This document shows positions 14,019-58,608 of a DNA stretch of 64,000 nt, one piece after another. The notes under the pieces were generated by a model. That model had not been told where the DNA came from. It worked only from the letters and a program-made list of their open reading frames with translations, and did not search any database. The DNA is from Phallusia mammillata (taxonomy: Eukaryota): positions 14,508,001 to 14,572,000 of the forward strand of contig OZ281501.1 in assembly GCA_965637545.1 (NCBI GenBank). The letters are read 5' to 3'. Within the stretch, counting starts at the first letter, position 1; every line of letters starts with the position of its first letter. The position numbers and the translations under genes were made by a program.

Positions 14019-17000
14019 ATGGATTTACAAAAGTGCTCATTTACATTCTTATTTCTCGTTCTTTCACAGTAAGTAAAAAAGAAAACCTGTTAATGCACGT
14101 TATTGCATGATGACAATTTGCAGCACTTATTTTGGTGTAAAGTTAACTTGTAGATTTTTCACAAGATTAAAGACCTTTTTTCGGTGCTACTGGTCAATAA
14201 TGTTGTTTAAACAAAACGCATTGAACAAACCCCCTTAAAACCAAACTTTTGCTGCTGTAAGAAATATGTAACAGGTATTATCACACGCAGAATCAGAGCT
14301 AGAAGACAAAATATGTCATATTTTATGAGAAAATACCCGAAACAAGTCAAAACTCGAACCAGCAACGTAACGAATTTTTTATAACCGCACAACCTCTTTG
14401 ACCACAGCAACAAATTCATACAGGATCACATGCACAAATTTCCATATTACAAGCCTTCTATAACAAAATGAAATCAGGGTTTATCTGTTTAATCTTAACT
14501 TAAAAATTTAGGCCAAAACATGTTCCCAAAACGGAGAAGTGATTCATGTTCGCGTAATCTCATATGGTAAACTCCAGAAGTTCGGCACTCGAGACAAATA
14601 CATAAGGCATTATTCATAATACAAATGTATACAGTATCTGTTTGCCAAAGATTAAGGCAAAGTAACAATCTCCTTGCTGTAGCTTGCGGGTTAACTGTGT
14701 GATCTTCAAATAGGAACAAACAATCGCTTTATGGTTCCTAGCAACTTTTAACTTAGCGGCAAGATCTTCCTTTGAGGCTTACAGTAATGTAATCCACACA
14801 TACGCGTCGGTTTAAACAAGATTAAAGCGAATTTTCTTCGAGAAACGCCGAAAAGCTGACTTGATTTCGACAAGCGATGGATTTATAAGCTCTTTTTTCA
14901 CTCAACGGGTGGTCTGTCGGTAATCTTTCATTTGGACCCAAAACAAAACCGAATTACAAATTTAACCAACTGGACAAGCTGGTAGTGAACACAACAATTC
15001 GACAATATATCCAAAAATATAGTAAGCTTTTGAAACACTATACACAGATCTGTTCACAAGTTTAATGAGGAAAATAACGGCCCAAAAAGACTTAAAAAGC
15101 GCAGATGATGGCATTAGCATTTGTCGAAACGTTTGATTAATGAAGCATGTCGCTTTTAAGTCTATTTGGACCGTTATTATCCTTATTGATATATTCAGCC
15201 TTTCGTTACAAAACATGACATGCGAATAGTCTACTGATAATATCCACTTTTTACAGGACCCTCGCGTATAAAGATTATTACCATTTGGGTGGCGGGCACC
15301 ACGAACCTCGCAGGGAATCTCGACTTACTACTCGTATCGTATGTGGGAATGTACCCGGTTTAACGCCAAAACAAGTAGCTCTCTGCAATGAAGACCCACA
15401 TGCCGTTGCATCGGCCATACAGGTAAGCTATACTCGTTTGTATTTGCCAAGAGGTTTGGTGACTTTTGCTGATGTTTGCGCAAAAAATCGTTCGGACAGG
15501 AAAGAGTAATGTATGAATAGAATTTGAGAACATTTTTTTTCTGTCGCTTGGTCCAAAATTTTCTGCTTTGAGCAAGGATAAAAACTAAAAGCTACGATTT
15601 ACAAAAGTGGCGAAAATAATAACTCCGGAAGCGCGAAATATGCGTAGTTTATTTGTTGATACGCCGTAATATCCCTTTTCCATCGTTCTACTCCACCCAT
15701 CATTGCACTCTAATGGGATGTTATGATTTTTAACGACGCAACGTGAATTAAATCACAGTGAAAGGTTTAAAAATGGGAAACTGATTTGAGTGTTATGGTG
15801 TCGTCCCTTGGGCGGGCAGTGAAATGTTATTTTCTGCACTGTGGGTTGTTGAATTTCCTGTTCCAGGCATTTTAAATGTCATCTTCCACGGAGGATGTAA
15901 AACATGGCATAATATATAGCTTTGAAAAAAATTGTAGTACCCAGTATGTACTGTATTTGTGGAAAAACTGGATCACATGTTTGAATGAAGTTTGCATACA
16001 ACTGCAGCACAAACGTTTGACATAATATCATTACCGTTAAAATTAAAGTAAAATTTCAAACTTGCCCGATTTAATAGGTCACAGCGTTTGATATCTGCTG
16101 TTTGATGTGGTATTTTAACAATTTTAAAGCAAAATTAAAAACCTTATTTATTTGGTTGAATTTTGCAGGGTCTTCATGTTGGAGTACACGAATGCAAGCG
16201 ACAATTTAAAAATCATCGTTGGAATTGTAGTTCACTGGAAACGAAAAACAAGATGCCTTTTAATAGCGCGTTTCTTAAAAAAGGTAACAAATCACGTTCA
16301 TAGTGCAAAAAAACGAAGAGATTTTTAAATACATTGTTTTTCACGCAATCACTATTTTATTTATAAAAAGCCTTTTAAATTCTTTTAAAACTTTTGAGGC
16401 ACACGAACTAAAAAGTAGCAAAGCTTAGAATAAAATTAAAGTAACATACAAGTCAGTCATTTTGCAACTAGAAACAATTTGACAAAAACTTTTGCCATCT
16501 TTATTAAAATAAACATTTTTTTTGAAATTTTTGGTGAATGGTTTGAGGGGTATGGCAACACTTTTGAGTTTTTCATTAAGTAACCTTCAAGGCAAAAGTT
16601 TCGAAAAGTTCAATAACAGTATTATATCGATTTCAGCCTCCGGTTTCAAGGAGTCGTCATTCGCTTACGCAATCACGGCTGCTGGTGTCGCCCACCAGGT
16701 CGCGCACGCGTGCAGCTTGGGCAAAATCAACGAGTGTCATTGCCCACTGTCAGCAGGACGGCGGAAAAAGATAAAGGTAATTTTCAAATTTTAGCTATTA
16801 ACGCACTTACACAAAAAACCAAACTCAAGACGCCAATTAGTTGCTAACTTCAATCAGTTTTGTGCAGAATATGCAAATTTCAACTTTACATATTTTGTGA
16901 TTTCATTTACATTATCCTAAAACGCAAATGACAACATGTGAAAACAAATTGCGCATATCCAGAAAATTGCTTTAAAACTCAACTACATAGCACAATCGAC

Positions 17001-20000
17001 AGACATTTACATCTTTGCTTTACATTTAGGCCATAAATAAACAACATTTTTCGCTCACAGGACAGTTTCAGTGCTGGAGACAACGTGAATCGCTTCAAAT
17101 ACTTTGGCTGTAGCCATAACATTAACTTCGCCATCAATTATTCGATTAAGTTTCTTGATCCGGAATCCACCAAGGACCACACTTCGATGGTCAGACAACA
17201 TAACAACAGAGTCGGCCGACTTGTAAGTACAACTGTTTTATTTCCAACTTAAAAACTAACATGCAATTTAAGTATAGTTGTTTGATATAAACACTGAACA
17301 TTTTTCAATTCGTTGGCAGTTTATAAGTGTCCAAAGGTTTGCCAAAGAAAATAGAGCATATCATTAGGCAATACTAAACAAACGCATTAACCAAGTGTTG
17401 AAAATCTGATGTAAACTTTAAAAGTAAATTATTAAAACATATAAATTAGTGGAAGTTGCACTGACAACAAAACAGAGATTAAACTTTTGAAATAAATTGT
17501 ATTTTCTGAATACTATCTGGCAGCAATTTCTTCATATTAGTGAAAAGAATGACTAAAAAATGTAGAACCACAGAAAATATCGGTGTGTGCGGTTTGTAGT
17601 GTTAAATCGGTGATTGTAAATCCTACATAATTTTGTTCAGATTGTGGGCCAAAACATGAAACGATCTTGTCGTTGTCATGGGATTTCAGGATCATGTAAC
17701 CAGGAGACTTGTTGGTATCAGACACCCAACTTTCGTGAAGTTGGAGAAATGATCAAGCGAAAATACGAATCTGCCCAATACCACGGCGAACTACCGTAAG
17801 TTACATCAGTACATCAATGACAATGTGATCAAGAATATGAAAAGCAGATAGAAATACTAAAAAACTGCCCAAAAGTTTGTGTACAATGAATACATTCCAA
17901 TACAATAAATCATTGCATTGATGATAACAATAGCGATTGTTGAAATATCTGTAATAGAATGTATTCATTGTTCAAACACAAGTTCACTGGCAGTTTTGGA
18001 TTTAGAAACGCAACTGTTACGTTAGAAAACTCTACGTGTTACGGTGGTTTGTAGAATATTTGTTTTCTAATGTCTGAGTCGACAAGAATGCGTTGTGCGC
18101 TCCACGGCAGCACCTGGTTCGCTGATACAGTTTAATCCAGTTCGTGATATCATCAGTCAACAAGGTGGAATTTCGCTATCTCAAGAACAGTTAGGCGCGC
18201 GAGCTTTTGCCTATTTTTACTTAATGGCGTTATAGGTTACTTAACTAAGGGACTTTTTACCGAAAAAGGCACGAAAAAAATTAAGCTTGAGCTTAGTTTA
18301 CCGAAGTTTTAACGTTTACCAAAGGTATATTTTACAAGTAAATAGTTTTCGCAATTCAATTTGTACGTTTTTACCAAAATCACCAACGGTTTTACAAACA
18401 ATTCGTAACAGCCTTACACAGAAAACACATTTGTACCAACGAATTCGGTACATTCCCAGCCTAGCCTTGTACAGCTCAGCAGATTCTATTAGTAGATCGC
18501 AATTTATGGCCTCATTATACAACGGAGGCCGCCGCAATTAAAATGACAAACACGGTACACGCGAAATATGTTGATCTCTGTTTGTACAGCGGTCACAAAA
18601 GCATGGCGCAACACAACTGGTTTTTAGGCAACTTGTTTGTTGATAACTTCTGGGAACGTGGAAAGCCACAAAAACCTATTTCGTGTCATCTTTATCTGGC
18701 GACGCCAACGGGTATAGACAAGAGATATGGCTTCGTTATCTTTGCCTGGGTATGGCACCATCGGTGTACGACCACTGCCAAAAAACACCAGAACACGAAG
18801 ATTGCGCAACGGGGTCATGGGTTAAAGATGGGGTTCTACAGATAAGCGTTACCTCGAATTTCGAAGTAGACATTATGCAGTACAGCGTACTATACACGAA
18901 AACGTGCGCCCAAGCATTTTGTTCATATTCGTCATAGTATAAATGGTTTAAACTTGGGTTCATCCATTTGTCTACCATGGAAACAAATATTACCTAAGTT
19001 TAATCACGAGTTACCACACTTACACCATTTTTGTTAATTGATAAACGCCTAATACACCACATACAACAGTACATAATGCCGTTTCTGCTAAATTAGGGCG
19101 CAGCTTCCTTGAAAAACGCCAGTTACAGCGTTCCTGTGGCGTTCCACAGTTTAAGTTCAAAATTCCAGGTGTATATATAAAGCATAATCATGATAAACCA
19201 CGTTTAACCCAGAAACTTAACAAATCTATGTAACTAATCCGTACCGCAATGGTCTATTAAGGCAAGCATGTCACTTTGGCGTTTGTTTTTACTTTTGTTA
19301 AAATGTGCGTTATTGCGTCAAAGCCGGGTCGTGAATGTTACACGCGTATTAAGCGCCTTTTTGTCTTCTGCCTTCTGCCTTCGGGCTTCGATTGTTTAAA
19401 GCCTAACAAGCCGTAAGTATTTCAGTTTTATACCGTCTCGATACGAAAGACCTTTTATTTGGTCGCCAAATGCCTACAAAGTGGCGTGTAAACACGACAG
19501 GGTCCCACCCAATATCTTACATACGCACAGGTGCAAATTTCAGGGTCTCGCAGTTTTTTTGACCGCAGACCTCTGGGCGATAACGCGCTGCAAGAAAAGT
19601 TAAGATGTGTTTATGTGGCGCAAAAACACACCACAAACCGTGCTCGGAACGCGAAGCCCTGTCACGCAAGTAAAAACACCGCGCAAAATGAGTAATTTTT
19701 GCCTGACTTTGGACCACAAATGCCCGCAAAAGCTCTCACACGTTGTCCGATGCCATAGATTGACCCGAACCGACCGCGAAATATTTTTAACTCTTCGTTG
19801 AATATTTGTCACCTCGTGGCATCGATATCTCTGACCGGATCGCCCCTGTGATTAATCTCTCATTGGCGGCTTTGGCTGTTTGCGAGATCCCGAAGCAGTA
19901 GATAAATTTTAACCCCCTGCGCTCTTTCTCATTAACTTCAGTTTTTTAACCTTGAGATATTTTGACCGATATGACGCTGGTTCGATGTATTGGGTTGATC

Positions 20001-21822
20001 TGATATCGCTAGATATGTCGTAGCTGCGGTGCTGGGGTGATTTTATGTTGATAGCATGGCGATTTTTTTCCTGTGATGATTTAAAAGCGGTTTGTGCTTC
20101 CTGTAAGGCTGACGAACACAGAAGGTTTCCACAAGAATGTCTCCAATATGCGATCAAGGAGAATAGACAATCCGTGTAAATTGCAATTGTCACACAAAAA
20201 TGCCAGAAAATAAAGCAAACTCCAACTTTTCGTAACAAAAACGGCTTGCAGCATTTTAAGTTTAAGCTATTTCGTACGGCAAAAGCGAATAATTTCGATA
20301 AAACCTACGTTTAGGGCGAATACATTTAGGAAAACATGCTTCAAAAGCGGCCAAGTCACAGCAATTAATCACAACGCACCCAAATATTTAATTAAGCGCT
20401 CACGGTTCAGCAAAAAATGACTGAGAGGTCATGCGTTGGTGATAAACGATAGCAGTGAAGTTGACATCGGTTTTGCAACGGAAGAGGCTTGTCAGAACGG
20501 AGTGAATCATGAAATGCATTCACAACAGTGTAGCGATTTTACATGGGAGATTTATATCGGAAACCGATCAACGAGGATCTTAGCAGCTGCGACGTGGTGT
20601 GCTGTATTTATTGACAGTAGTCTTGTTTGTGCAGACGATGTCGGTAATAATTCGTTACTCTTGCTTGTTTTTATGCACGACCTTGCCTTGGACGAAATGG
20701 TTTACTAAACTAACTTATGCTGGCAAATGCATTTTTTTGTAAAACTACGAAAACCAATATACGACCTGCTAAAAAAATCTAAAAAAACATTCAACTAAGT
20801 TTTTGAATTACTTTACAAAATGATTTGCTAATTTCTTTCAAAATGTTTGCGACAATTAAATGCATAAGCCAATCAGCAAATGGACACAAAACTAAAAAGA
20901 AGTATAACAAAACTCAAAAAATTAAAAAACATTTAAACGTATAGTAACGCAATCAATTTTACAGCCTTAACAAATGATGCAATTACCAAAATATGCGTTG
21001 TGGGACAAACAACCGCTAATGGGACAAACAACCGCTCAATGTTGGGAAGCCTCTTTGGTTTAGTATTACTTCACTAAGGCATAGTTTGCGCAATTTCTCC
21101 ACATGAGCAGCATGGGTGGCTTATGTTGTGTAAGCTTATGCGGCAACTTAAGTCGTAAATCAAAACTTTGCTCGGGGCCCAACTTATATTTCATGCAATC
21201 AGTCGAAATTTGGAGTAAATAAGGCAAGCGGAAATCGTACGTGTGTGTGGAAAACAAGATTCTTTACAGGTGTTGTAAGACAGATTAAGTCTTGGCCCAC
21301 GTCTTTTTGGAGCTTGCCACACATTTAAGAGTGCAATTTGCAAAGGGACTATAGGCTATATCTAAACCAAAAGTCAAGGGAAGCTGGTATCAATGAACTC
21401 TTTTCTTGACTGTTTCTAGTTGGTTTAGAATTAAATTTATAACGTCATGTGTTGGAATAGGAACTGTGGGATTTTTGAACACAATTAACAACGTGTAATT
21501 TTGCATTTACAGAAGCAACAACAACGTACGACCCAACAACGCAGTCTCAACGGCAAGCAACGATGCACTGCTTTACTACACCACGTCCCCACGATTTTGC
21601 AACCCGAATCACAGGTTAGCTGTGGCAGGAACTAAAGGTCGCACCTGCAGTCGTACAGCGCCACCTAGCGACCCCAGTAGCTGCCATCATATGTGTTGTT
21701 CACGGGGTTACGACACCCACAGGGAGGTACGACACGAAAAATGTCACTGTCGGTTTCATTGGTGCTGCTACGTGGAGTGTCAAAACTGTACCGTATCTGA
21801 AAGAGTCTCCGTGTGCCGCTGA
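14019..21822 (+). CDS. WNT10: Wnt10 ligand (WNT10A/B pro-orthologue), ~365 aa, 7 coding exons
   Basis: Exons 14019-14068, 15257-15422, 16169-16283, 16637-16776, 17061-17222, 17641-17795, 21513-21822, all GT-AG and phase-consistent. Signal peptide [57 protein letters not shown] matches recalled WNT10A ([37 protein letters not shown]). Also [11 protein letters not shown], acylation motif [10 protein letters not shown], and C-terminal [16 protein letters not shown]. Exon 1 is the least certain. Confidence 0.93.
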
Positions 21823-24584: not shown

Positions 24585-26287
24585 TTATTTCACATCGATT
24601 CGCGAAAATGAGTGATCAACACCGTATTCGTTTTCAACATAGACCTCGTATTTGCCACTGTCTTTCTTCGTAGCATTTTTTATGGTTAGAATTGTAGTGT
24701 CTCCATCAATATCCCAGAATAGGTGGTCATCCTCATCAACGTCTTCGCCATCTTTTGCCCAGCCAACCTGTCGTCATTAAAATTAATTACATGCATATTA
24801 ACACATTTGAATTCCGAATAGTTTCATTTGAATTCCAAATAAAGTTTATTTAGGATTTATTTAAACAGGTTTACGTTAAAATCAACACCTTTGGCCATTT
24901 TGTTGAAGTCCATGCCCAAAATATATTTAACAAAGACTCATAAAAACCGTGTAACTCACATCAGGTTCTGGGTCTCCAACGAGTTTAGCCGTCATTGTGA
25001 TAGTTTTACCGCACTTGCAAACTTGATTCGGTGGCCCTTTCTCGATCTTAGCTGGGGCTTAAAAACAGTTAGATTTAAAAAAAAAATTTAAATTATAGTT
25101 CCTAATGTGAAAGGAATGAGGAAAGCTATTTAGATTTAACAACCCTAAAACATACATTGTTTCTTTTGTTTCTTTACACATGTTATAGATTTATTTGTCT
25201 TCGCAAACGTACGCAATAACATGACTCCTATTTGTGTCTTGCATTAAACAACGAGATATCTTATCAAAATAAGCTGCTTACTGTTAATAGTGACTTTGGC
25301 AGAGTCAAAAGCTTCTCCGAACTGGTTGTACGCTTGACACGTGTAAGTACCGAAGTCATTTGAATTTGTGTTTTTTATGACCAACGCACAAAGATCTGGC
25401 AGTTCAAAGACGATCGTATATTTGGTACCCTCGTCAATTTTTTGACCATCCTTAAACCACCTGCAACAGTTACATGAAAGTTAACCATAAAACACAAAAA
25501 ATCTTGAATTTAGGTAAATATTCAAACAATATTTAAGACTTTTAAAAGGTAGGCCTAATCACAAGATGAAATAACAAAAACGTGTATAGTAGCAACTGGT
25601 TTCAGAAATACATGTGTGAAACATATCATTGATTTGCATACTTTACTGTGGGATCGGGAAACCCAGAAAGACGACCTTCAATTCTTGCTGAGCTGTCCGA
25701 AAGTGAATTTACGTCTTTGAGTTCTTCCACAAATCTGAAGCAACGTGAACCAGAATGTAAGCAGAGCAAGTCCAGGCATTAGTTTAAAGGGAGAGAATTA
25801 AGTCAGATTCGGACATGAGTGCCATGCAGTCTTACACATTTGCTTCGCAATTTCTCTTTCTTTGCACGAATGTTAATAAGTACAGGAAGTGTATGAATAT
25901 ACAGTTGCACACCTAGTTAAACAATATAGGCTTGTCTGGTAAATTGAAATTTGGTATATATTGGATAAACTCACATTTTGAGATGGTTATGGTTTATTTT
26001 ATAACCCTAATGTACAACCTAATCACGCTGGATAATAAACATGCTTTGGCGACCTGAAAGAAACACTATTTATGATTTACAAACCTTCAACTAAGTTGAA
26101 TATAATTTTTTAAGCAGCAAAAAAGAGGTACTATCTTGGTATGCACAATTTACCTTGGTGGTCCATCTTCCTTAAACTTCTTACGCACTTGATGGCCTCG
26201 AAATGATTTTTGGATCATACGAGCCGCCATTTGGACCTTCTCATCTTTAAGGTTGATGCCCGGAGGAGCCACCGGTTTTGACGGCAT
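24585..26287 (-). CDS. SPEGNB: SPEG-neighbor protein orthologue (IQ motif + two Ig-like domains), ~228 aa, 5 coding exons
   Basis: Minus-strand exons 26287-26154, 25734-25642, 25460-25282, 25057-24960, 24767-24585, phase-consistent. IQ-like AARMIQKSFRGHQVRKK; Ig motifs FPDPTVKWFKDG and DFGTYTCQAYNQFG. C-terminal VGWAKDGEDVDEDD...DSGKYEVYVENEYGVDHSFSRIDVK closely matches recalled human SPEGNB (VGWTKDGEDIEEDD...DSGKYEVYVENSLGMDQSFARVDVA). Confidence 0.88.
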
Positions 26288-27501
26288 GGCGCTTCTGCGA
26301 TAAAGCGAAATTTTTTATACATTGCAGCTATTTTTGTTCCACTAAATCGTGCAAAATGTGCAAATGAATCGCTGTTATTTGCTCAGTATAAAATGATATT
26401 ATTAATGGCATACTTCACACAACGTTAAACCTGGACAAAAATTAGGTTTAGGCTATATTGCTGGTGCTGTTATCATTTGTGTATAACTGAGTGGGAAGCA
26501 TTAAAGTTGATTAAAGAAAAACGTTAAGCGATTTACTAGCAAAAAGCGCTGCCCCTAAATTGCGCAAATTACTGAAAAAGCATGTATAAATTATACATTT
26601 ACAACCGGTAAAATCATAAGTTATATCCTTTCCGGAAGAATAAAACATGAGTACGAACGCTCCACTTACCTTTAGGCCTAGACGTCGACACAGGCAAACA
26701 GCAACTGAACGGTTTTCTAACAACTCGCCTTCTAATACAGAACAACTACTGTTATGAATCCTTAAGCTACAGGGTAGCAGGGGTAGCGGGCTCACCCCCA
26801 TGGCCCTCCACATCGCTCAGCTATTTTGCCATCTGACAGCTGACGGTGTTGGCGTCACGGAGGCTTCGAGAAGCAAGATAGCTCAACTGGGATTTTAAAT
26901 CTCTGGAGAGGAGAGATTGCTTTTTCTTCAAGCCTTTTTTGGAATGCCGGCAGCATCTGCGTTTGTGTCAATTGGTTTTAAATGTAGTGGGTTACGATAG
27001 CTGTTGCTGGTTTGTTTTTCATCGTCTTCTTGTAATCGGGAACGTTTAACTGGGTTAAAAGTCATTGGGACTTATGTAATCTTTGCATTTTTTTAAATTT
27101 CCAATTAAACATCATATTTATAAAATATTGCATCAAGTATCCACACAAGAGCTTTAAAATGTTTCGACACTATCTGTTTTGTCTGGATGTCTAGATCAGC
27201 TGCTAACTGATTATGATTTCAACGATTTGCTACTGAAGAAACAAAAAATGTAAAATTGCCGACGTTGTGTTACAAGGTGTAACATTACTGCCTTTGTGAT
27301 GAGTTGTTTGATTGTCTTGTTTTTATTTTAGGCGGGCGGGTAACGCCTTAATTCGTTGTGCTTGCGATGAGTTGGCAGTCGAGCTGGCTGCTGATATGTT
27401 ACATTTACAAGATGCGTTAAATCAGTGGTCGGCAACCGCCGGTCCGCGAGGAGTTCGCTACCGGGTAGTTTTTCAGGTTAAATGCTTGAAAACATTTAAA
27501 G

Positions 27502-27735
27502 CAGTGGTCGGCAACCACCGGTCCGCGGCCCGGTACCGGTCCGCGAGGAGTTCGTTACCGGGCCGTATTATTTTTCAGGTCAAACGCTATAAAACATTTT
27601 GTCCATATGTCCCGGGGATGTTTAACTAATTTAGGCGTCTTCTTTGCTAAATATTTCTAGTTTTTTGAAGACCGGTCCGCGAAAAAATTTCACTTTAAAA
27701 AACGGTCCGCAGTAGAAATAGGTTGCCGACCCCTG
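27502..27735. mobile_element. hAT-type MITE (234 bp) preceded by a partial duplicate of its left end (27423-27501)
   Basis: TIR cagtggtcggcaacc / ggttgccgacccctg (1 mismatch). 8-bp TSD atttaaag / atttaaaa. A second left-end copy starts at 27423. Confidence 0.8.
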
Positions 27736-27749
27736 ATTTAAAACAACAC

Positions 27750-27830
27750 AAATGGCTCGGACAGGATTAGAAGCCACGACCTCGTAAACAGACGGCGGTT
27801 GCGCTAACCACTCGACCATCTTGAAGAGCA
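27750..27830 (-). mobile_element. tRNA-like SINE head or tRNA pseudogene
   Basis: Minus strand gatggtcgagtggttagcgc (A-box-like) ... ggcttctaatcctgtccgagcc (degenerate B-box). The acceptor stem does not pair. Confidence 0.45.
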
Positions 27831-28360
27831 TGCAGGCTACACTTATAAATGCTTTACTTTACTCAAATTCTGTCATATTCACGTTTGCTTACAGGCAAAA
27901 CCCCGTCTGATAGAAACGCACAAATTCACATCTAATGTAGTTGTTTGCTGCTAGAAGAGGTCAAAGTTTTGTTTCTCTAATTACGGTAGATGTCGCCACA
28001 TGCTGCCGCAAGTAGGCCTATATTGGCTGTTTTCAATGACAAGGTACTTGGCCGAATGGTCCGGCGCGCCTGACCAACAAGCTGAGTTAATAAAACCTGA
28101 TCGGAATTCGTCCCCGGGATCATTTTGCGTTCAAACCCCGTGAAAAAACTTCTTTCGTGACAAATTAACAAATTTTCAAACAGATCAACCTTTTGGTTTT
28201 TCGTTTAGATTTCATCTGTTTTGTTTGTTTCTTTTTCAAAACAGCCTAATTTTAGTCGAGTTATTTAATTGATCAGACTTCGACACGTCTACAAATTTAA
28301 AAAAAAATAGTTGATCTGTGCTCTTACACCATTTACTCTCGTGTAGGCTATCTTTTAAAC

Positions 28361-42336: not shown

Positions 42337-45300
42337 CTTATGTGAAAAATCTTGAATTAGTTGAAAGAATTACCAAAGGTATTTGCATGCACTAGTTTGT
42401 TCCAGAAATAGACATGCAAAAAGTTATATTCCTTTCTGGGTCACATGTACAAAATACTAACATCAAATAGACAAAGACTACTGATTGTTAGAAAAGAAAG
42501 AAATATGTTTAAAAGACATCTAGTTACAAGCATTTATTTTGAAAGTTCTATGATCTAAATTAAGTTGTATATATGTTTGAACATAATATCATTATTACTG
42601 GCTGGTTGAATTATGAAAGGCCATAGAAAATGTTATGTTTTTATTTAGGTTAAAAAAACTGTGAAAGAATTCTTGCTGCAGGAGTATTTTTACTGTTATC
42701 AGTGTTTGCATTTAAACACATATAAACTGACAAAAGATAAGTGTGCAAGAGGTTTTTACCTAGCAAGCATGAATAATTTTGCTCATCTAATTGTGTTCAA
42801 GATATTATAGCAGCACTGCATTTGTTTTGTAATAAATTAACAAATTTGTGTAAAAAACTTCGTTATTGTGAAATATGATGATTCTTCAGTACTTTTGGTC
42901 ATTGAGCTTGGTTGTCCCTAAACATTTTCCCATTTTGGTCAAACATAATTTAATCTAAGCACAAAGAATTATAAGTGATAATGCATGAAACCTGGCGCTC
43001 AGTATTTGCTGGAGAAAGACCACAAGCACACAACATCAAGAGAATATACAACACCAATCCAACTTGACTCAGCCAAAGCAAGAATTAGATACAAAGAAAC
43101 ATTAGGTAGTAAATAAATGAAGAGAAACCTCAAGGAAGAGTTGTCAGCTGGGTTAGTTGGGTCACGGAAGGAAGAACGGAGACTTGCTGAAGCAGCTTAC
43201 ATTAAAATACCTGGCGTACATACCTACGTTACCTGCAAATGTGAGGTTTGGGAGTTATTGCCGCTCCTCGCAAGTGCAGGGTTGCTGTACATGTTTGCTG
43301 GATGCGTAGCTCGCCAGTATGCTTCCAGGTACTCGGCCAAATGCTCACAAGCATCTTCTAGTTGATTTTCGTCAAGAACAATATCAAATAAGTCCTAAAA
43401 ATATTATCCACTGAATTAATATAGTGGCCCTAAACAGGAATTCCCCAATGAGGAAGTTTTGTATTTGCATAAAAATACTACAACAAAAACAAGACTGACA
43501 ATTATGAATATTTTTGTGGTAAAGCATTATCATTCAAAATACAACAAAAACATCTCCAAGACATTTCTAACCTAAAATATATCGAAATCTATCGAAATTT
43601 AGAGGAATGGTGTAGCTCTACTTATTTTATGATTGCTTTTTATGAAACGATTCATTTTTGTAGCAAGTTTTACTTTATTTGCAAACTTTACCTGATTGCA
43701 CTGGGACAGCTTTTCTGAAGCCACCATTTGAACATTGAGATGTTTTGACTGTGATTTGCCCCTCGACTTTATGAGACGTTGCAAAACCTTAAAAAAATGA
43801 AAAATGGAGGTTTATAAAAATACAGCTTGTTTAGTAATGTTTTACCAAAATATGCAATTAGGCTTGAATGTGATCTACCCCATATTCCTAAAAAATATAT
43901 ATGTATATTATAATTTCTTGTTTGTAAATTGAAGAAAATATCTTTTCACATAATGAGTACCAGTTGTGGTATCATACAGAATTGGTGAAACTTGGCTTTT
44001 CGGCCTCCCGACAAACTGGAGTACCATTAGAGGGCTACACAAGCCAATAAGGTCTATGTCTTGTCACCAGATACACTGATGAAACCTTCTAGGTCAAAAC
44101 AGTGTGTACTGTCTGCGGCTTTCTTATCATTTATTGGCTTGATGGTTTAATACTGATATGCTACTGTTTGAATTCAGCATGTAATATGATTAACTGGATT
44201 GCTATTAACCTTGAAGTTTATTAAAAGTTAAGAAGGATTCAGTCAAGGTTGAACAATCTAGGTTCATCTTTTAGAAACATAACTTTAAAATACAAACTGT
44301 TGGTGGTTAAAACTTACTTTTGTGGAAGATATTTTTAGTGACACTATGATGGGAGCTAAAGATGTTTTTGTGAGTTGCGAAGGGTGATTAATTGTGTCCG
44401 CATCCAGAACCACCAGTTGAAGTGTTCGTGCCAATTCAAATATCCTTTCTATCTCACGCTGCACTTCAGCTAAAAAAATGAGAACGATTTCTTGTATGAA
44501 GGCTCAAAAACGAAGAGATATCATTTTTTGCTAGAGTACCCCAGTTTCAATCTGGTTTTAGCAAGATTTTGCTCCTACAAAACTTCCAGACAGCTTAAAA
44601 TCTTAATTAGATACATATTTTTTCTACTTTATTTATACTTATGTATTTATGATTTTATTTGAACATTTTATGTAAGTTTTTTTTGAGTTAGCAGTTTTAG
44701 TTTGAATTAAGCCAAACATTTTACAGAATGAGTTGATTCTCGAGATGTTAAAAAAGCTAAATTGAATAAAGTTCAAAAAATGTGACAATTTTCATTTTTA
44801 GTAACTAGTTTTTGAATTCCCAAGCCCAAGATGGAGTCAACAAATGCAGAGTTGTAGTTTTAGCGTAATTAGGGGGTATTGCAAGCAGATTACATGTACA
44901 CCATATATGCATTATGAAACACAATCCAGTTGCTCAAAAGCATTGAAATTACATATGGCAACCGAAGAAACAATGTAACTAAGGCAACACATTTTAGCGC
45001 ATTACACATAAACATTGAAAAACTTGTTTGGGGTTACAAAATCATCATTTGTGCAAAAACACAACTTTGCAGCCCAAAAGATAGTACAAACACTTACCCA
45101 AGCTGGATCTGGTGTTAGATTTTTCAATGACAGCCCGTTTACTTGGATTATTAAGTACAGCTCGCTTAGCCAATGAAATATCTGCTGTAACTCTTGTAAT
45201 TGAAATTCGTCCCTCAAATCTTCTTTTTAAGAAATCAAATATGGCTTTCTGCATCATGTCAGTCACCTAAAAGTATTAGGGTAACAAAAATGATCCAAAA

Positions 45301-48300
45301 ATATAATTTTGACATGCGCAGTGGTGATATGTACAACTGATGGAAAGGTATAGAAAATATATAAAAGTTATTTCAATCTCTATCTTCATGTGAATTAACT
45401 GTCTCATTTTAAATTGTGTTGGTTAAGCACAGTGCCAGAACGAAAAGCAATAACAAACCCAAAAAATTGTTATGAAAGGACTTTTTTAACAAGTTATGGA
45501 ATGACACCCTCCACAATGTTTGATTAAAAAATAAAATTAGCCTAATTAAAAACCAAAGTTTTTTCAGTCAGTTTCAGTTTTGTTCAAGCTGCTCTTGGGG
45601 TGAAGTTTTTTAAAGTGCAAAGAAAACCATTTTAACTAAACCAAAATCCGAAGAGTGCAAGAATTTGTTATAATAAACTCCACAATAATCACATGTGGCA
45701 TAATGAGTAGATACGAAAAAATATTCTTCATATCTGTATCTTGATTACTTATCATATTAATCCTCTTGATGTAATAAGTTCGCGAAATTTAGCTTGCACA
45801 CTATGCAAATTTAACCCTTTTAGATGCAAAAGAATGCATAATATTGGACCAAACATAATACCCAAACATTAGAGAAGACTGCATTGCACAATGTTGAAAC
45901 ACATAAAAATCTAACAAATACATCAAAATCGCAATTGATATAAATTATGCATCAGTTATAGAGAGTCTACAAATACAATTTCACCTCATATCCCTTCAAT
46001 GACGGTCCTACAAGCACCACCGGTCGCATCGAGGGCACAACATCGTATGGCGGAGTGGTCTCTTGTTTTCGGAAGAAGGCTTTTCGCTTGCCATCCTTGT
46101 TAGCACCTCCAGAATTTACTGATGAAACTGAAGTCTTTGGGCTTCTTAGAGAAAACAACATAAACAGATAAATCAACTATTTTTTTATATATATCACATC
46201 TTTGGCTAAAATCATAATTTTGTTTAAAAGTTATAATCAATAGCGAGGTAATGATATGCATGTGTTGTTCAAAGACTAAATGACGAAAAAAAGTTCTGTG
46301 TAAGTACATAATTATTTATTGTTTCGCAAAATGAAACATTTATGAAACTGGTACACAGCAAATTAAAATTTTTTAAGGCAACCAAAGTCACTTTTTTAAT
46401 TAAAAAAAGGGACTGTCCTTTCATCTAGCACCATAAGGTACTGTAAAAGGATAAAATCTTATGTACGTACATACAAAGGTCAAAAAGTATGTTTGTTAAA
46501 GGTGAGCTGCGCTGGTTTAAATAGTACTTAAGCGTATTTGCATGTAAGCACTTTAACACACACAACTATATCAATAATTTATTGCTATTTTTGGATGAAC
46601 ATATTATGCTAAACATGGGTAATTTAAGTTCTAAAGGTTAATCCAAAGTAAACTACATAAGACTCTGAGCAACAATTTGTATTTTTTTGACATCAGAAAA
46701 CTTGGGGGAAATTATAATATATTTTTTCAAGAAGACAATTTTAAAACACAGCAAAAAAATGTTCTTCAGTCTGTCTTAAAAAAGACTATAAAAAAGGCAA
46801 TTGACTGCAGGTAAGGGTAATGCCATAACACGCTACAAGAATTAGCCTGTGTAACAGGGGTTGACTCTATTTGAATAAGACAGAAACAAATAACGCCTCT
46901 TTAAATGGGTGAAAGTAATAATTTTACAACTAAAAGATTACATTGCCGCTGATCGTCTGCACTCCTTTTGAACATAATTTGCTTTTTGACTACAGGTTTG
47001 TACACAAACCAGGGTAAAAAGTGTTTTGACATAAGATAAATCAATGCGGGTCTTACTTGGAATAACAATATAGTAGTAATGAAATTGTACTCAATTATTC
47101 CTAAAGCCACAGAACTAGAAATTGCACACTTACAATCAACCGCATGTTACCCCATGGTATTGCGATTTGAATACTGCATGGTGTGTGAAATGTGAGAATA
47201 CAAGCCCCTACAAGCGTAAATTAGACCAGATTCTAGTACTATTTCAATTATAAACCCTCAACCAACCCGAATAGCTCTAACCATCAGCGCTTTCAAAAGT
47301 CTGCAAAATTATTATTTTTGCAAAAGCATATTCAAGTCCTTTACAACTTCCTGTAACAAACAGTATTTAGTACCACCGTATTGGTAAGGGGTGTAAAAAA
47401 TTTTGGTAAATTAGATGAAGTAATTTTTTTTTTAAATCATGTAAAATATGTATAGACTCAATATAATGGTGAAAATTTGTTTTTTGCAAAGTTTTATAAT
47501 TTTTTTGTCCATAAAAATAAAAATAAAAGCAAAAAAAAACAGCTACTGAAGGAGTGCTCTTTAAGTTCAAGGCCCTTCTTATTAAAACATAATAATGCAT
47601 TAATACTCAAAAAATAAAAAACCTATCATAAACTTCTGAAAAAACACATTATTTCAAATTTATGAAATTTATTTGATTTTGTTAAATTGTTGTTATCCCT
47701 GGTAAGCAAACTTGTTTTTACAGGAAAATGTTAACATTCTCTGTGTATCATGTATTATTTATGCAAAGTGCACCACTTTCATGTTCACAGCCAAACAAAG
47801 TGTACACAAAACATTTAATCTATGCAGAGAAAGATTACGCCCAAGGTTTATCTGTAGGACACCCACAATTTCTAAAACAATGTCAGTATGCTGTGAAATA
47901 TTTACACTATGTTCTCCAAGCTTATAGCAGTGAAGTTTGTTTAACGGACTAAAATGTTACTTATAATCAATTATGAATTTTGTTTGACCACTAGTTGGCC
48001 TAAAAATATGCAGGTTGTAGGTTTGTGTTTTCAACAATTTCTTGTTAGTTTTGGCTAAAATGATTTGGCCTATACACTAAACAATACTGATTTAAAACTA
48101 ACTTTATAGCAAGCTTGATGCATTATGAGTTACAATCAGCAACGGTACACTGTGAGCTAAAAACTATATTATATCATAAACTAAAAAATGCTTCATTTCG
48201 TGCAAAATTATTGTTAAAATTATATGTATATGTATGCAACAGTTGAATATAAAAATATAAAATCAATGTCAAACTAAATGCTATTCTCAGGCAACAAAAA

Positions 48301-51300
48301 ATATTTATAGGCAACCCAACTTGGGTTACAGCCAACATTTGAAAAACAGTGCCTTACAGGTTTGTAAGTTACAAAGATTTAAACCAGGGATCAAAAACCC
48401 AGGCATGCAAGGTGATTTTTCTTGGCACACAATTTAACCTGTTACACTTCTTGTTTCAATTTTTTATCATGACATTGTCTTAAATACCAGTCTACATGCA
48501 CAAAACACTCTTCTTTCTGCTTACTCTTAAGGTCACCAGGCACAATCGACTGTTACCGACAAAAGTTGAAAAGTGAAGCCATTACCAAATAAAAACAAAG
48601 TAAATTGGCATGCGCCACTTTAAAGGTTGTCAACCCTGGTTTAAACCAATGACCTCAGGATCACTAAAATAAAAGATATATACATAAAACCGACCTTTGT
48701 GTAGTGGAGAAGTTTTGTTGTGGGTTTGGTGAATCCGAATCATCTTCGTCCATGCCATTAGTATCCATGTCATACGTCACTGTAATAATACACAACTTAG
48801 TGAACACTTTTTAATCATGTTATAGCCGATTCTGTTTGATCAAGGTTTACTATTCATCTTTGGAGGTCCAGGGTTTTCTGCACGATTTTTTAGGATAGAC
48901 AAATTTAAAGCATGCTTTAAAAATATTGGACAATACCATAACGAAAAATCAAATACGCAAAATTTCTTTTTATTAACAAATTAGTGTTTTTGCAATTTTG
49001 TCAAGCAATAATAAACTAATAACAGACTACAGGAATTCTGTATGCAATAAAAACGAAATTTGCAACCAGGAGAAATAATTTTTACCAATATCAATTGGTC
49101 ATTTAACATGCAATAAAACAACAAAATTGTATACAATAATTTAATATCTTATATGGTTATAAATCACATTGCATTGGAAATCAATAACAATGATTTGAAC
49201 TTATGGCACAATTTTGCTCATAGTGTAGTGAATGGTTAGCAGCAACATAATTCAGTGATAGGTGCTATATCAGTGAAATGAATACACTTTTTTTCTTTGG
49301 TTGATCAACATGACCTTCAAGTAATATCTTTACATCATTTAATTGTGTTCAAAACTAGTAATGTATGCTCAAAACCAATGGTTTCATTGAACCTGGCTTA
49401 ACTGGTTCGATCGAATCCAATGAATTTTTCATTTATTTTGTTTTTAACGATCAGCAGGTAAATGTACATATAAAACTTACACCTTTATCACTTTTGTTAA
49501 GTTACATTGCTCTTAACCAGTTTGTTTCAATCATTTTGTATCACCACTTAACAGCAGTCTGTTCCAACTTTTGCCATTATTTTCCTCACGCTCAACTATA
49601 TGCAAATGACTTCAATGCTCAGAGCTTCTTGACTCTATTTCTTAACCTTCCACTCGAACACACCACAGGAACCTTTCTAGTGCTGGCACTCTTCCAAATG
49701 AGCTACACAAGCTTGGTGATAAGCCCCTGGTGAGTTGAATCATAGGCACTATTGCCTACCTCATATTCTGCACATGTCAGCCTTGACGTATCTGACCACC
49801 CGTTAAACCATTATTCAGCTTAATGCACATAATTTCTCAACTGGAGCCAACCCTAAGGTATCAATTCAAACAGGTGATAATGGCACACTCCTAAATGAAA
49901 CATAGTACGTCAGGCTTGTTGTAGGCTTCTGTGATGGGTGCAAATGCCACCGCAATTTTTTAGGCCTATGCCTTGCCATATATAAGAATACTTTGAAAGA
50001 CTGGCTTGATTTGATATTGTACCTAAGTTTGTAACCCTTTGGTATAGTACCCATGAAGCCTGGTGTATTATGATTTTGCTGCACAGATAAACCCAAGCTG
50101 GGTTAAAAAATCGAAATGTTAAAAGTTGAAAAACCTCCTTCAAACTGATACTGCATCTTTTTTCTCAGAATAATCGAACCATGCATAGTGTTCCTCCTTT
50201 AAACATATTCTTAGATTACATGCAAGCCTGAACTGGTTATAGTGAAGTAGCTACAGCCAATAAGCATGTGATGTCAGGCAATGCCAGTGGTGGGTTGACG
50301 TAGATGAGAGCATATGGGCATGCTACCTGAGTTTTGTATATAACAGCACCTGGGGAGGAGGGAGGTGTAGCCTTTCTAGACAAAGTATTATTACCATCTC
50401 CGAGACTGGACGTTGACGTGCCTCCAGATTTGGACATGTAGAATTTGTTCGACTTGGATCCTGGAGTTTGAGACTGGCGGATCGCTTCTAGCTTGACAGG
50501 GGAAGGAACGAAACCAACACTGCAGCCTTCTTTGACTAATCGACCGATCCACCAGTCATTGTTATATTTCTGTAAAGTTTAAGTATGTAAAGTTTTTTTT
50601 ATCAAAATCCACTTGATAAAACTAAAAGTTTTTTTTTTTTTCGTTTAGTGATTCAAGAAAACACACAATAGCACTAAAACAATAGCTGCATAACATTAAA
50701 CCATTAAGGAGTGCAAAAGAGTAAAGTTGGTGGATAATGACAGGACATGGTTACATTATACCAGTGGTTCTCAAACTTTTTTTGTTGCGGCGCCTCTGTA
50801 AAAGTTTACTAATCTTGCGACGCACCAGCAAATAAAGGTTAATGAGGAAACTTATTATTTAAGTTGTGTTTATTGATACAACCACAAAAATCCACGAAAC
50901 GGAACTATTCTGCGACGCCCTTGGAAACTTAAAACGATGCACCAGGGCGTCGCGGCGTATAGTTTGAGAACTACTGCATTATACTATTGTAGCACTATGA
51001 AAAATCAAAAGCATAAAATGCCAAGATTTATTTAGTATATTTGCAATTACTTATGCCAACATCAGTAATTTAGACTTTGACACACAAGGTTTCATAAAAG
51101 ATTTTAAAAATGTTCATTAAAATGTTATGTTGTACATAGTATGCAAGGCAGTAGATTTTTTTAGCTAAATCTGTTTGGCAATCAAAAAAGGCAATCAATA
51201 AACTGAAAAAGTAAAACAAATATCTCAAGATATTGCATAACTAATCATTCAAATTTAATCACAAACATAACTGCCAAAGAACTTGCATATATAGAATACA

Positions 51301-54300
51301 TTATGCAAACATTTCAACAATCACTGTTGTCATAATCAGTGCAGATTGTCAATCAAGCTGTATAACACATTATATAAAGCACCAATAGTGATTGTTGAAA
51401 CGTCTGCATAATTTATTCCATATACACTAGTTCTTTGGCAATTATGTTTATAATTAAATTACTCTCTAAGTCCGCATGTAGTGTTCCTAACCATTCAAAC
51501 ATATGCAATTTTCAATTTTTATCCATATACGAGTATGTGAGTACATTCTTAGCCATTTAGGTTTTTTAGGGGTTTTATTCTTTTTCTATTATCCTCCCTA
51601 TGGATTTATCTTCAGTAGCAGGTGCATTATTACTATCTAAAAATAACTTTGCATTTCACATGGTCTTGTAAGCTGCTTTGCGAAGAAATTTGTACTACAG
51701 GTGGTCAAATTTTAACATTCAAATAATTAAAAGTTTTAAATGATTTTTTAGCTGGATACGCAGTTTTTATGACCAGACTCTATATAACAACAAAGATTCA
51801 AGCTGTACATTTGATCATTTTTTAGAATTGTAGTTTCTTATGTAGTATGCAGTGTCTCAATAACTGGACTATACCCAGTGGTGGGATTCAGCCGGTTCGC
51901 ACCGATTCTATAGAACTGTCTCACGAAATTTTCTGAGATCAGCGAACCGGTTAGCATTACTGGTTACTGTGAATGGACTTTTTGTAACAGAACCAGCTGA
52001 AAAATATGACTTTTGTGATAGAACTGGCTGACAAAAAATTTGAATCCTACCACTGACTATACCCATTGGTCTTAATATTTGATAAATACCTCTTTAATAT
52101 GAAGAAAATCTTTTGCCTCAAACGAAACTGCAGCACCCTGGACAGGAGAGTCATCGTCATGGGAACCATCATAACTTACATTAGTCCGAACAGCAAATGC
52201 TACCGCCTTGGTCTGAAAATAGATAACAAATATGGTTAAATAACAAATCAAATAATTATTCAATACCAATAAAACATTAACATTAAACCAAATTTTATTC
52301 AGTGACAATTGTAGTTTTAGAATTGTAGTTTCTTATGTAGTATGCAGTGTCTCAATAACTGGACTATACCCAGTGGTGGGATTCAGCCGGTTCGCACCGA
52401 TTCTATAGAACTGTCTCACGAAATTTTCTGAGATCAGCGAACCGGTTAGCATTACTGTCAATGGACTTTTTGTAACAGAACCGGCTGAAAAATATGACTT
52501 TTGTGGTAGAACCAGCTGACAAAAAAATGAATCTCACCACTGCTTCTTAAGTACTGAGTTCTAAAAACAGAAGCAAAATTTGTTAAAACCTTAGCTTTTT
52601 CCAATTGGTTTAAAGCCTGGCGTTCAGTTTCACGCTTAGCGGCCTCTGGATCTTCTTCTAATGATACATCAGAGTCGGAAGGTCTGCTCATACAGGAATC
52701 TGCTGACCCCTAAAAAAGTACAGTATACATGTAAAGTCAAATTAAAGCACTCTGCCTTGACCAAGCACGGTTAACAAACCAGCGTTAGACAGAAACGAAT
52801 ATTTTAGGGTTTAAGGGGTGAAAATGAGTAAATCCTTTTAAATGGTACAAAATTTTTTAGAATACCTTACATTGCACCAAACAACAAAGCATGAAACTCC
52901 TAGCGCATGTATCAGTATAGCCGTTAAAAAAACTAGAAGGGTGGCTTAGCACATTTCACTACAGCATATACACTACAACCTATTTTGCAACTGTAATAAA
53001 TTCCCTATGCTTATTATATACTGGGTCCCATATCATCCAACATCTTTTACAACCTTGATTGTTTCTGCAGGCAGAAACTCATGGGTCCCCGATACCGCAA
53101 AGTTGTAAACAGACAACCACAAGAAAGGGTGTTGTAAAGTCAAACACAGTGATTGGTAGTGTTCCCTAAATAAACATGTTATGTAAAGTACAAACTGTCC
53201 TAATCTCATGCAATTCAGATATTTTTATAAGTTTGTTTGCCTAAATAGCGTGAAGCACTGACATCTCAAATGGCATATTATACAAACTGTCAAAATGTCA
53301 TTTCACTCAAATATTGTTAAAAAATTCACCCATTTTAGGGGGCTAATGGGGGAGTAAATATTGGGGCTACAGGGTGAAACACAACAATCGACGCCATAAA
53401 ATGGAATAATAAACAAACTGTCCAAATTCTATCCAAATCGGACATTGTTTAAAATTTTACCCATTTTAGGGGGCTAGTGGGGTAAATATTGGGACTACAG
53501 GGTGAAACACAACAATCAACGCCCTAAAGTTAAACAATGAACAAACTGTCCAAATTTCATCCAAATCGGACATTGTTTACAATTTACCCATTTTAGGGGG
53601 CTAGTGGGGTAAATACTGGGGCTATTGAGTCAAACAAAACAAATGGCACATCTACATAACTATATCTTCCATCAGTGAAAATTTCATCCAAATCCATCAA
53701 ACATTTCAAGGCAAAACGAGGTGGACAAACTTTAGGAAGAAAAAAACAAAAAAACAAACAAATCGAGTAAAATCAATATGTGTCCCCTTCAGGGAAGGGG
53801 ACCCATAAATATTCTGTTTTGGGGGCCTAGGGGTGAACCGCTAGATCATTCCAGGTCAAACTTCAGGAGGATTAAATTTGGATTAATAACTAAGATCTGT
53901 GTAAATTTAAAGCACCCTTTCTTGACCAAACGTGTATAACAAACCAGCGTTAGACAGAAAAAAGAAAAACACTGTCAAAAACAATACATATGTGTCCCTT
54001 TCAGGGAAGGGGACCCATAAACAACAGGATGAATAAACTAAGTTCAACCATTTTAATTCTTATTATGCAACTAAAGCACAAAAACAGCATTCTAGTTTGT
54101 CCATAAAACACAAAAGTTGAAAATACAACTACTAATTCTAGTAGTTGCTTGGTTTAAATAGAAGTCGTCAACCTCTTGCCTAAGCTGTTTATTCATGATA
54201 TGTAAAGTGACTCAGAAGTTTAATTCAAAAAAGTCAAGCACTTTTTGATATAATTGAACTGTTCCAATGCCTGTTTTGTGTTTGTTATAATGTAATAGTC

Positions 54301-57300: not shown

Positions 57301-58608
57301 GCAAGCTGGCACATAGCAAAAAATAGGGCCATCTGAACTGAATAAAACAAGCCTTTGTTGTATTGGACAGTAGCAAGCCCTCTGCAACTGTTTCTCCTTG
57401 CCAGAACCAAGACCTATGCCACAGCCTTTAACTGCTTTCTAGAATCCATACATAATTAATGAGGTGCAGCTATCAGAGGGGGTACAGGGGTGGTACAAAT
57501 GCCCAGACTGAATCATATATTTCGTTTTCAATCCACTCAGCTTGCTCTTATGTAATTGCTCAGTGTTGGGCCATGAACTAATGTGTATAGCTCGAGGAAA
57601 CAGTATGACCGCACAGGCAAAGTTATCGCATTTTGGTTTGTCTACGGTGCTGTTTAGATCCACTTATGATGTCATTTTTGCACTTTGCTAACACTTAAAG
57701 ATTACCTTGGAAAAAAACAACTATTAATATAAATGCTTGTGTGCCTGCCCAATGATATTTCAAGATAAGTCAATGGTTATTATCAAGTAATTGGCATGAA
57801 AACAAATGAAAATACTCCAATATATAAATTACTGACAATTTAAACACCCTTTCGACAAAAAAGTGCATAAAAATCCAAAACAAAGCATTATATAGAACTA
57901 GTATTTAAAAAAACAGTAACCTACCAAATCTTTTTCCAGGCACATTTAAATTTATCCTTTGACACCAATGCTTGTTTAGTATAGGTGACAAAAATAATTG
58001 AACAGTTCATTTTTTGTTCGCACTTATTAGAAACTCAAACCATATTGAAGGCAAAATTTGCAAATTGATTTTGGATGTGCAAAAAATGAATTAGTAAAGC
58101 TTTTATGATTTGGCAGTGCTGGCAATGACATTTATTTCTATTTGGTTAAAAGCAAGTATGAATCATTTTGGGTTCCTATTAATCTTTTAAAGTCTTTAAA
58201 CATCACATTTTTTGTATGTTTTACAAAGTGTATGTTTGTAATTTTACAGATTATTTGTTTGTTTCCTAATTTATTGCAATACTGTTGACAAGATATAGGC
58301 ATCTGTCCATATGTTTAATGATGAAAATATATAATGGCCTAAATAGATGTAAAAACGACATGCTTTAATTTTCAAACGTTTCAGCAAATGCTCATGCCAT
58401 GATCAGTGGAGCAAGTCCTCTTTATGTTTATTTGGGCCATTAATTATTTTCATCATTAAACTTGTATTACCAGATGGTTTGAAAAAATGTAAAAACATAT
58501 TTTTTGAAACAATCATACCTGCTTGGTGAGGGAATTAGATGATGATCCACTCATACTTCCACCATGTTTCAATCGACTCTTTTTGTTAGAACTTTTTACT
58601 CCATGTGT
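42241..58608 (-). CDS. CACNB: Voltage-dependent calcium channel beta subunit (SH3-HOOK-GK), single pro-orthologue-like CaVbeta; first coding exon not securely identified
   Basis: Minus-strand exons 58608-58519, 52709-52590, 52212-52090, 50569-50350, 48779-48695, 46144-45985, 45266-45098, 44469-44318, 43787-43692, 43394-43233, 42336-42241, phase-consistent. Motifs [101 protein letters not shown]. Confidence 0.93.
47138..47378. mobile_element. Truncated inverted copy of the 59312-59615 MITE family
   Basis: Reverse complement of 47270-47340 matches the internal gacttgaatatgctttt...gacttttgaaagcgctga...tagagcta of the 59312 copy. One TIR (gtatttagtaccacc) is retained at 47363-47377. Confidence 0.7.
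48385..48638. mobile_element. Aged hAT-type MITE
   Basis: Degenerate TIR cagggatcaaaaacc / ggttgtcaaccctg; TSD atttaaac / gtttaaac. Confidence 0.6.
50762..50976. mobile_element. hAT-type MITE (215 bp)
   Basis: TIR cagtggttctcaaact / agtttgagaactactg (1 mismatch); perfect TSD cattatac. Confidence 0.88.
51876..52055. mobile_element. hAT-type MITE, copy 1 (downstream intron of the CACNB SH3 exon 52212-52090)
   Basis: TIR cagtggtgggattca / tgaatcctaccactg; perfect TSD actatacc. Confidence 0.88.
52371..52542. mobile_element. hAT-type MITE, copy 2 (direct repeat of copy 1, including ~57 bp of its left flank)
   Basis: First ~86 bp and the upstream flank (ttttagaattgtagtttcttatgtagtatgcagtgtctcaataactggactatacc) are identical to copy 1. 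The right part diverges and there is no matching right TSD. Confidence 0.8.
52742..54020. repeat. Composite repeat, probably Helitron/Helentron-derived: ~129-bp tandem units plus two 3'-hairpin ends
   Basis: Units cattttagggggcta...caaatcggacattgttt start at 53331, 53462 and 53589. Perfect hairpin gtccccttc-agg-gaaggggac at 53782-53802, with a near-copy at ~53993-54013. cttgaccaa...aacaaaccagcgttagacagaaa is shared by 52756 and 53921. The family assignment is inference. Confidence 0.55.
55723..56161. mobile_element. hAT-type MITE (439 bp) with TAG termini
   Basis: Perfect 13-bp TIR tagtgatgggacg / cgtcccatcacta; perfect TSD gaatctgt; many internal cgatacc / cgagtac repeats. Confidence 0.92.
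56602..56658 (-). CDS. CACNB: Candidate alternative first coding exon of CACNB (short N-terminus [19 protein letters not shown])
   Basis: ATG at 56658, 19 codons ending CAG|GTAATA in phase 0, compatible with the phase-0 exon starting GSADS at 52709. Lies between the long-form exon 2 and exon 3, where vertebrate short-N-terminus first exons lie. Confidence 0.45.

Follow-up and report, generated by a model that had tools for sequence, protein, structure and literature searches.

A five-gene run around Wnt10 and DNPEP in the ascidian Phallusia mammillata may be a decaying relic of ancestral linkage

In a 64,000-nucleotide stretch of the Phallusia mammillata genome (GenBank assembly GCA_965637545.1, contig OZ281501.1, positions 14,508,001 to 14,572,000; hereafter the window), five genes follow one another without interruption from ~14.5 to 52.7 kb, a span given as ~45 kb: Wnt10, a gene encoding an IQ motif and two immunoglobulin (Ig) domains, DNPEP, a PLEKHA8-type gene and CACNB. 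On balance, we read this run as a decaying relic of ancestral linkage and not as a protected block, a reading that we hold with no great margin of confidence. A previous annotation made from the sequence alone (the original prediction) had described five adjacent genes within ~45 kb and taken them for a retained pre-duplication neighbourhood matching the vertebrate Hox-chromosome paralogons. The presence and consecutive order of all five are borne out by Pfam, UniRef and a published Wnt10 alignment, with 'SPEGNB', the name given to the Ig gene, serving as a label only. The genes of the run are as follows.

14520-21822, plus strand: Wnt10 (Pfam wnt and identity to Pma_Wnt10)
24585-26287, minus strand: gene with an IQ motif and two Ig domains (Pfam I-set and IQ)
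31835-33232, plus strand: DNPEP (Peptidase_M18)
33650-38103, plus strand: gene with PH and GLTP domains, FAPP2/PLEKHA8-type (Pfam PH and GLTP; solved relatives)
~42.2-52.7 kb, minus strand: CACNB (VGCC_beta4Aa_N, Guanylate_kin and family motifs)

The gene calls rest on Pfam scans of exon-sized open reading frames (ORFs) and on comparison with solved structures. The window has a G+C content of ~36% and many short exons. The corresponding scans of the spacers between the five genes found neither a tRNA or Rfam RNA gene nor an ORF recognisable by Pfam, and the ORFs in the first 14 kb of the window have no Pfam match.

Wnt10 reads from an ATG at 14520 to a TGA stop at 21820-21822 through seven coding exons, with six exon pieces matching Pfam wnt. 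Position 14019, from which the run had originally been counted, would fall in a putative 5' untranslated region of this gene. The exon peptides agree letter for letter with the sequence labelled Pma_Wnt10 by Somorjai et al. 2018 (PMC6060547, Additional file 2), who assigned the ascidian Wnt genes by phylogeny, and the predicted identity as Wnt10 is thereby upheld. No second Wnt gene, Wnt6 and Wnt1 included, was detected in the window. This absence fits the published ascidian picture, in which the only Wnt cluster kept is Wnt9-Wnt6-Wnt3 and Wnt10 lies apart (PMC6060547). The approximate exons are:

14520-14567, 15240-15497, 16166-16290, 16660-16775, 17060-17230, 17640-17796 and 21520-21822, plus strand: Wnt10 exons

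DNPEP is a single intronless ORF of 465 amino acids (aa) that covers the full Peptidase_M18 profile (positions 1-432, E = 5.6e-169). The protein shows 100% identity to a Phallusia mammillata UniRef entry, A0A6F9DBF5, and named DNPEP proteins of fishes, lamprey, molluscs and cnidarians reach 55-58%. The ORF is likewise uninterrupted in all four of the other ascidian assemblies in which we located the gene (L001, L002, L007 and L011). The pufferfish gene spans 4.9 kb and gives no direct translation, and hence appears to be spliced. The intronless form therefore seems to be old and shared among ascidians.

The PLEKHA8-type gene starts 417 bp past the DNPEP stop on the same strand and comprises ~11 exons, which encode a PH domain at the N terminus, a linker rich in Ser and a GLTP domain at the C terminus. 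Both domains are divided over two exons, the PH domain giving a weak Pfam match. Among solved structures, the best relative of the PH exons is the PLEKHA3/FAPP1 PH domain, and that of the GLTP exon is the PLEKHA8 GLTP domain 5KDI, at 61 bits versus 39 for GLTP itself. PH and GLTP exons lying consecutively on one strand constitute the FAPP2 architecture, and the same exons are kept in other ascidians. It probably represents the one pre-duplication gene to which both vertebrate PLEKHA8 and PLEKHA3 correspond. A pyrimidine tract followed by AG at 33620-33652, a few bases before its start codon, looks like a spliced-leader acceptor site.

The Ig gene encodes ~228 aa in five coding exons:

26154-26287 (IQ), 25640-25734, 25281-25458, 24958-25058 and 24585-24765, minus strand: Ig gene exons 1 to 5

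Exon 1 carries the N-terminal IQ motif (22.7 bits against a Pfam cut-off of 20.3), and exons 2-5 carry two I-set Ig domains, each divided over two exons (E = 6e-12 and 3.5e-12). Three of the four introns (24766-24957, 25459-25639 and 25735-26153) appear as CT..AC joints, i.e. minus-strand GT..AG ends, in contigs of run X9, which is presumed to be RNA; the fourth junction is predicted. Reading frames and split codons join cleanly throughout. Among the best 60 solved-structure matches, the Ig exons are nearest to Ig domains of titin, myomesin and MyBP-C, which by similarity makes the product a sarcomere-type Ig protein, and no SPEG/APEG-1 signal is seen among the same 60. A search of representative proteins with exon 1 was swamped, with only multi-IQ proteins in the best 150 and neither the Phallusia protein itself nor an orthologue visible. 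These comparisons were made exon by exon, and no exon is long enough to reach a 238-aa protein by word search.

SPEGNB is a small protein of ~230-240 aa with two Ig domains. The Phallusia protein is of this kind, with ~228 aa and two I-set domains in addition to the IQ motif, and its gene lies head to head with DNPEP at a distance of 5.5 kb. Size, domain layout and this head-to-head position beside DNPEP fit SPEGNB. It is a tentative proposal, to which we give somewhat less than even weight, that the Ig gene and human SPEGNB are orthologues and that Wnt10-SPEGNB-DNPEP has stayed together ever since tunicates and vertebrates shared an ancestor. No SPEG-type kinase motif was found in the window, and hence no SPEG-like gene; a desmin gene was not found there either. 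In a second tunicate, represented by contig L014, exons 5, 4 and 3 are recognisable at 75, 66 and 72% identity (contig positions 14638-17177 against 24585-25458 of the window). The Ig protein is thus far better conserved between the two tunicates (66-75%) than the adjoining Wnt10 (52%, last exon), which suggests that the protein may be under strong constraint.

CACNB was recognised by a VGCC_beta4Aa_N domain (E = 6.6e-20) and by Guanylate_kin on two exons, and its SH3 and alpha-binding-pocket motifs were located. At 58608, where the run was originally taken to end, there is a short ATG-led ORF; a first CACNB exon near 58.5 kb is putative at best. The conserved exons are:

52461-52709, 52075-52332, 50240-50578, 45970-46176, 45048-45266, 44288-44503, ~43770-43790 and ~43314-43355, minus strand: CACNB exons

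We then compared the run with vertebrate gene maps. The human 2q35 order is PTPRN, RESP18, DNPEP, DES, SPEG, SPEGNB, GMPPA and then OBSL1 (2q35 deletion listing), with DES and SPEG flanked by DNPEP and GMPPA. The pairs WNT6-WNT10A and WNT1-WNT10B are reported at 2q35 and 12q13, respectively. Of the human positions on which the original prediction relied, those of DNPEP, SPEG/SPEGNB and WNT10A at 2q35 and of WNT10B at 12q13 could thus be confirmed from papers. The pufferfish locus reads TMEM198, DES (minus), DNPEP (plus) and PTPRN, with no SPEG within 10 kb of DNPEP, and no amphioxus DNPEP was among the hits of our search for DNPEP relatives. DNPEP is head to head with the Ig gene in Phallusia as it is with DES/SPEG in human and with DES in pufferfish. 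Literature searches for a CACNB/WNT10 paralogon found no paper.

The same gene families are thus linked at human 2q35/12q13 and in the window, yet at very different scales. In human, WNT10A is ~0.5 Mb and ~20 genes away from DNPEP, and CACNB3 is ~0.15 Mb from WNT10B. The Phallusia genes directly adjoin one another in a span of 45 kb, without Wnt6, Wnt1, desmin or a SPEG-type kinase motif among them. Unlike in Phallusia, the human FAPP genes and most CACNB genes are remote, at distances of tens of Mb or on different chromosomes. PLEKHA3 maps to 2q31 and PLEKHA8 to 7p14, both within a few Mb of a Hox cluster; CACNB1 maps to 17q12, CACNB2 to 10p12 and CACNB4 to 2q23. For three to four of the five families to have human members within ~0.5 Mb of one another is not readily ascribed to chance. 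Location on a Hox-bearing chromosome, by comparison, is a loose and weak criterion: about a fifth of human genes are on chromosomes 2, 7, 12 and 17, and more qualify when a family has several paralogues.

Other tunicate genomes were examined by tblastn comparisons between all ORFs of the window and the loci around relatives of DNPEP and TRAPPC2L, the latter a gene flanking the run in Phallusia. The four other assemblies with DNPEP are L001/L004, L002, L007 and L011 (the same as L012), of which L001, L002 and L007 group with Clavelina by TRAPPC2L similarity. In all four, PLEKHA8 exons come after DNPEP on the same strand, with spacers of 0.8-2.1 kb. Over the 8.6-10 kb preceding DNPEP, neither the Ig gene nor Wnt10 was found in any of the four, even at permissive thresholds. 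In L002, no Wnt10, Ig or CACNB exon was found in the 40 kb upstream of DNPEP, all but 1.8 kb of which was covered; this interval holds transposon ORFs and one WD40 exon and then reaches TRAPPC2L and its neighbour CLPB. CACNB was found neither within 10 kb past PLEKHA8 in L004 nor within 10 kb of TRAPPC2L in L005, L006 (Clavelina lepadiformis) and L008, where transposons were seen instead.

The Wnt10 end of the run was traced separately. When metagenome contigs were scanned with the last Wnt10 exon as query, two contigs of one tunicate were identified, L013 and L014, with 99.5% likeness to each other. Their Wnt10 peptides do not occur in the published Wnt alignment. Their Wnt10 has the same exon structure as in Phallusia, with a last exon 52% identical and, in L014, a last intron of 3.3 kb (~3.7 kb in Phallusia). 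In L014, exons 5, 4 and 3 of the Ig gene lie on the opposite strand 4.3 kb beyond the Wnt10 stop, i.e. tail to tail with it; the contig ends within the Ig gene, short of any DNPEP position. When positions 13-27 kb of the window were compared with L014 by blastn, only five coding exons aligned. No conserved non-coding DNA was thus detected around Wnt10, within the power of a comparison of one species pair of fast-diverging tunicates. In summary, microsynteny extends beyond Phallusia for two pairs, Wnt10 with the Ig gene (in one tunicate) and DNPEP with PLEKHA8 (in four assemblies), and the whole five-gene run was found in none of the other species examined.

Beyond the run, the window contains two further genes at its right end and a repeat region in the spacer between the Ig gene and DNPEP, outside all five genes:

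61974-62432, plus strand: TRAPPC2L, flanking gene outside the run (Sedlin_N)
62679 to past the end of the window (64000), plus strand: CLPB, flanking gene outside the run (Ank and AAA_2)
27300-28450, no strand assigned: repeated elements (contig pile-up)

TRAPPC2L is intronless and precedes CLPB on the same strand, with a spacer of 246 bp in Phallusia. The same tandem is present in three further ascidian loci, with spacers of 73 bp in L005 (10001-12512), ~28 bp in L006 (10001-16341) and 107 bp in L008 (2964-5635), so that it appears to be an operon-like tandem conserved across ascidians. The annotated CLPB product of Clavelina is fused to a WD40/PRP4-type part (1151 aa). TRAPPC2L-CLPB lies 40 kb upstream of DNPEP on the L002 contig (ctg13811l, 556-618 kb, which also carries L005, L009 and L010) and 55 kb upstream of it in L007/L008 (ctg9305), in both species on the same strand as DNPEP-PLEKHA8. 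In Phallusia, it lies 29 kb downstream of DNPEP-PLEKHA8, with CACNB in between. The same genes thus stay linked in a different order between Phallusia and the group that includes Clavelina. As for the repeat region, contigs from all four runs pile up there with a summed depth of 40-550, many loose ends and 90-95% likeness, and an ORF within it (27312-27626) has no Pfam match; these are probably short interspersed repeats present in many transcripts or loci.

To account for these observations, we suggest that the tunicate-vertebrate ancestor would have had the five genes in one chromosome region, which later became a Hox-linked paralogon (human 2q35, 12q13 and relatives), and that in the Phallusia lineage intervening genes would have been lost or moved, giving the compact run. 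The run would not be held as a unit: the pairs Wnt10 with the Ig gene and DNPEP with PLEKHA8 would persist, while the joins between pairs differ among ascidians. The identities of the genes, their adjacency, the two conserved pairs and the breakage of the run in other ascidians are observed; what we infer is ancestral proximity, for which human map positions, some of them taken from papers, are the basis, and a lack of selective constraint. Because the joins between pairs differ among ascidians, the pattern is that of residual linkage under ongoing rearrangement, and the lack of conserved non-coding DNA together with the broken run fits decay and not constraint. Of the retained pre-duplication neighbourhood in the original prediction, a probable residual linkage and two pairs survive, and a stable unit within tunicates does not.

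Several points weigh against a relic. The four other ascidian assemblies lack the Ig gene and Wnt10 beside DNPEP, so that the joins in Phallusia could have arisen recently and part of the likeness to human could be coincidence. Much of the weight of the human proximity rests on the candidate identity of the Ig gene as SPEGNB. The positions of CACNB1-4 and of PLEKHA3/8 and the CACNB3-WNT10B distance are taken from general background. A look-elsewhere effect applies as well, since many windows of this genome were examined.

The strongest rival holds that the five genes were juxtaposed by chance through rapid tunicate rearrangement, the match to Hox chromosomes reflecting a loose criterion, the many windows examined and perhaps residual macrosynteny. 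We regard this as unlikely, though as a serious contender. It draws on the same four assemblies, in which the Ig gene and Wnt10 are missing upstream of DNPEP (across 40 kb in one of them), on CACNB being found beside neither PLEKHA8 nor TRAPPC2L elsewhere, and on the position of TRAPPC2L-CLPB, upstream of DNPEP in two species and downstream in Phallusia, which indicates that the region is rearranging. Moreover, the human TRAPPC2L and CLPB genes are not known to belong to the Hox paralogon, which we also count in its favour. Pure scrambling, however, is unlikely to have reproduced the grouping of WNT10A, DNPEP and SPEG/SPEGNB within ~0.5 Mb and of CACNB3 with WNT10B at ~0.15 Mb, and the Wnt10-Ig pair shared with the divergent tunicate of L014 also counts against chance.

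The original prediction had further suggested that the run might be held together, either as a regulatory block around Wnt10 or by muscle co-regulation. In the former case, Wnt10 enhancers within or beyond the bystander genes would select against breakpoints. A developmental signalling gene among unrelated bystanders is typical of such blocks. Wnt10 regulates development, its last intron is large in Phallusia and in L014 alike, and its pairing with the Ig gene is conserved. Yet the Phallusia-L014 alignments over the Wnt10-Ig region are confined to coding exons, so nothing there points to a regulatory block; unlike in known blocks, no conserved non-coding elements were found and the bystanders are not kept by Wnt10, DNPEP-PLEKHA8 being separate from it in other ascidians. 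The Wnt10-Ig pair is also convergent, so that 3' ends and not promoters are shared, and the ~20 genes between human WNT10A and DNPEP speak against the idea as well. We consider a regulatory block improbable, and this part of the prediction finds no support. Functional clustering, by muscle co-regulation of the Ig gene and CACNB or by a DNPEP-PLEKHA8 operon of the ascidian type, seems to us more improbable still. It is favoured by the closeness of the Ig domains to sarcomeric ones and by the arrangement of an intronless DNPEP with PLEKHA8 on the same strand 417 bp on, the acceptor-like site before the ATG and the maintenance of this tandem in four other ascidians. However, the Ig gene and CACNB have two housekeeping-type genes between them and do not adjoin in the other species examined, and muscle co-regulation of the two finds no support. 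Ascidian operons are resolved by spliced leaders and rich in intronless genes, and DNPEP-PLEKHA8 and TRAPPC2L-CLPB resemble them in being same-strand tandems; only the latter, with spacers of ~28-246 bp, looks operon-like, whereas DNPEP-PLEKHA8 spacers of 0.4-2.1 kb are long for ascidian operons.

Reading the run as a decaying relic places it beside systems that are already known. It shares Wnt10 with the ancient Wnt9-Wnt1-Wnt6-Wnt10 cluster, a classic linkage older than the vertebrate genome duplications, but holds no other Wnt gene. Ascidians are reported to keep some ancestral macrosynteny with scrambled gene order. As this and the 2q35/12q13 paralogy are already known, and as the run breaks up elsewhere, current views are unchanged, and the run is a new but modest example of a known phenomenon, residual ancestral linkage. 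If it is a relic, it would be a compact tunicate witness to the layout of the Hox-linked region before duplication, linking 2q35 (WNT10A, DNPEP and the SPEG region), 12q13 (WNT10B and CACNB3) and the FAPP genes near HOXA and HOXD.

The Ig gene could carry further consequences. If it is SPEGNB and the neighbourhood has been kept, SPEGNB would be ancient, strongly conserved and older than the present arrangement of SPEG, and the Phallusia order would be the ancestral ascidian state, as the human order would then support the Phallusia arrangement over the one with TRAPPC2L-CLPB upstream of DNPEP. Human SPEGNB, within the SPEG locus, is described as a gene of unknown function with weak expression in tongue and skeletal muscle. 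This uncharacterised human gene would thereby gain a conserved invertebrate counterpart that could be studied in ascidian embryos.

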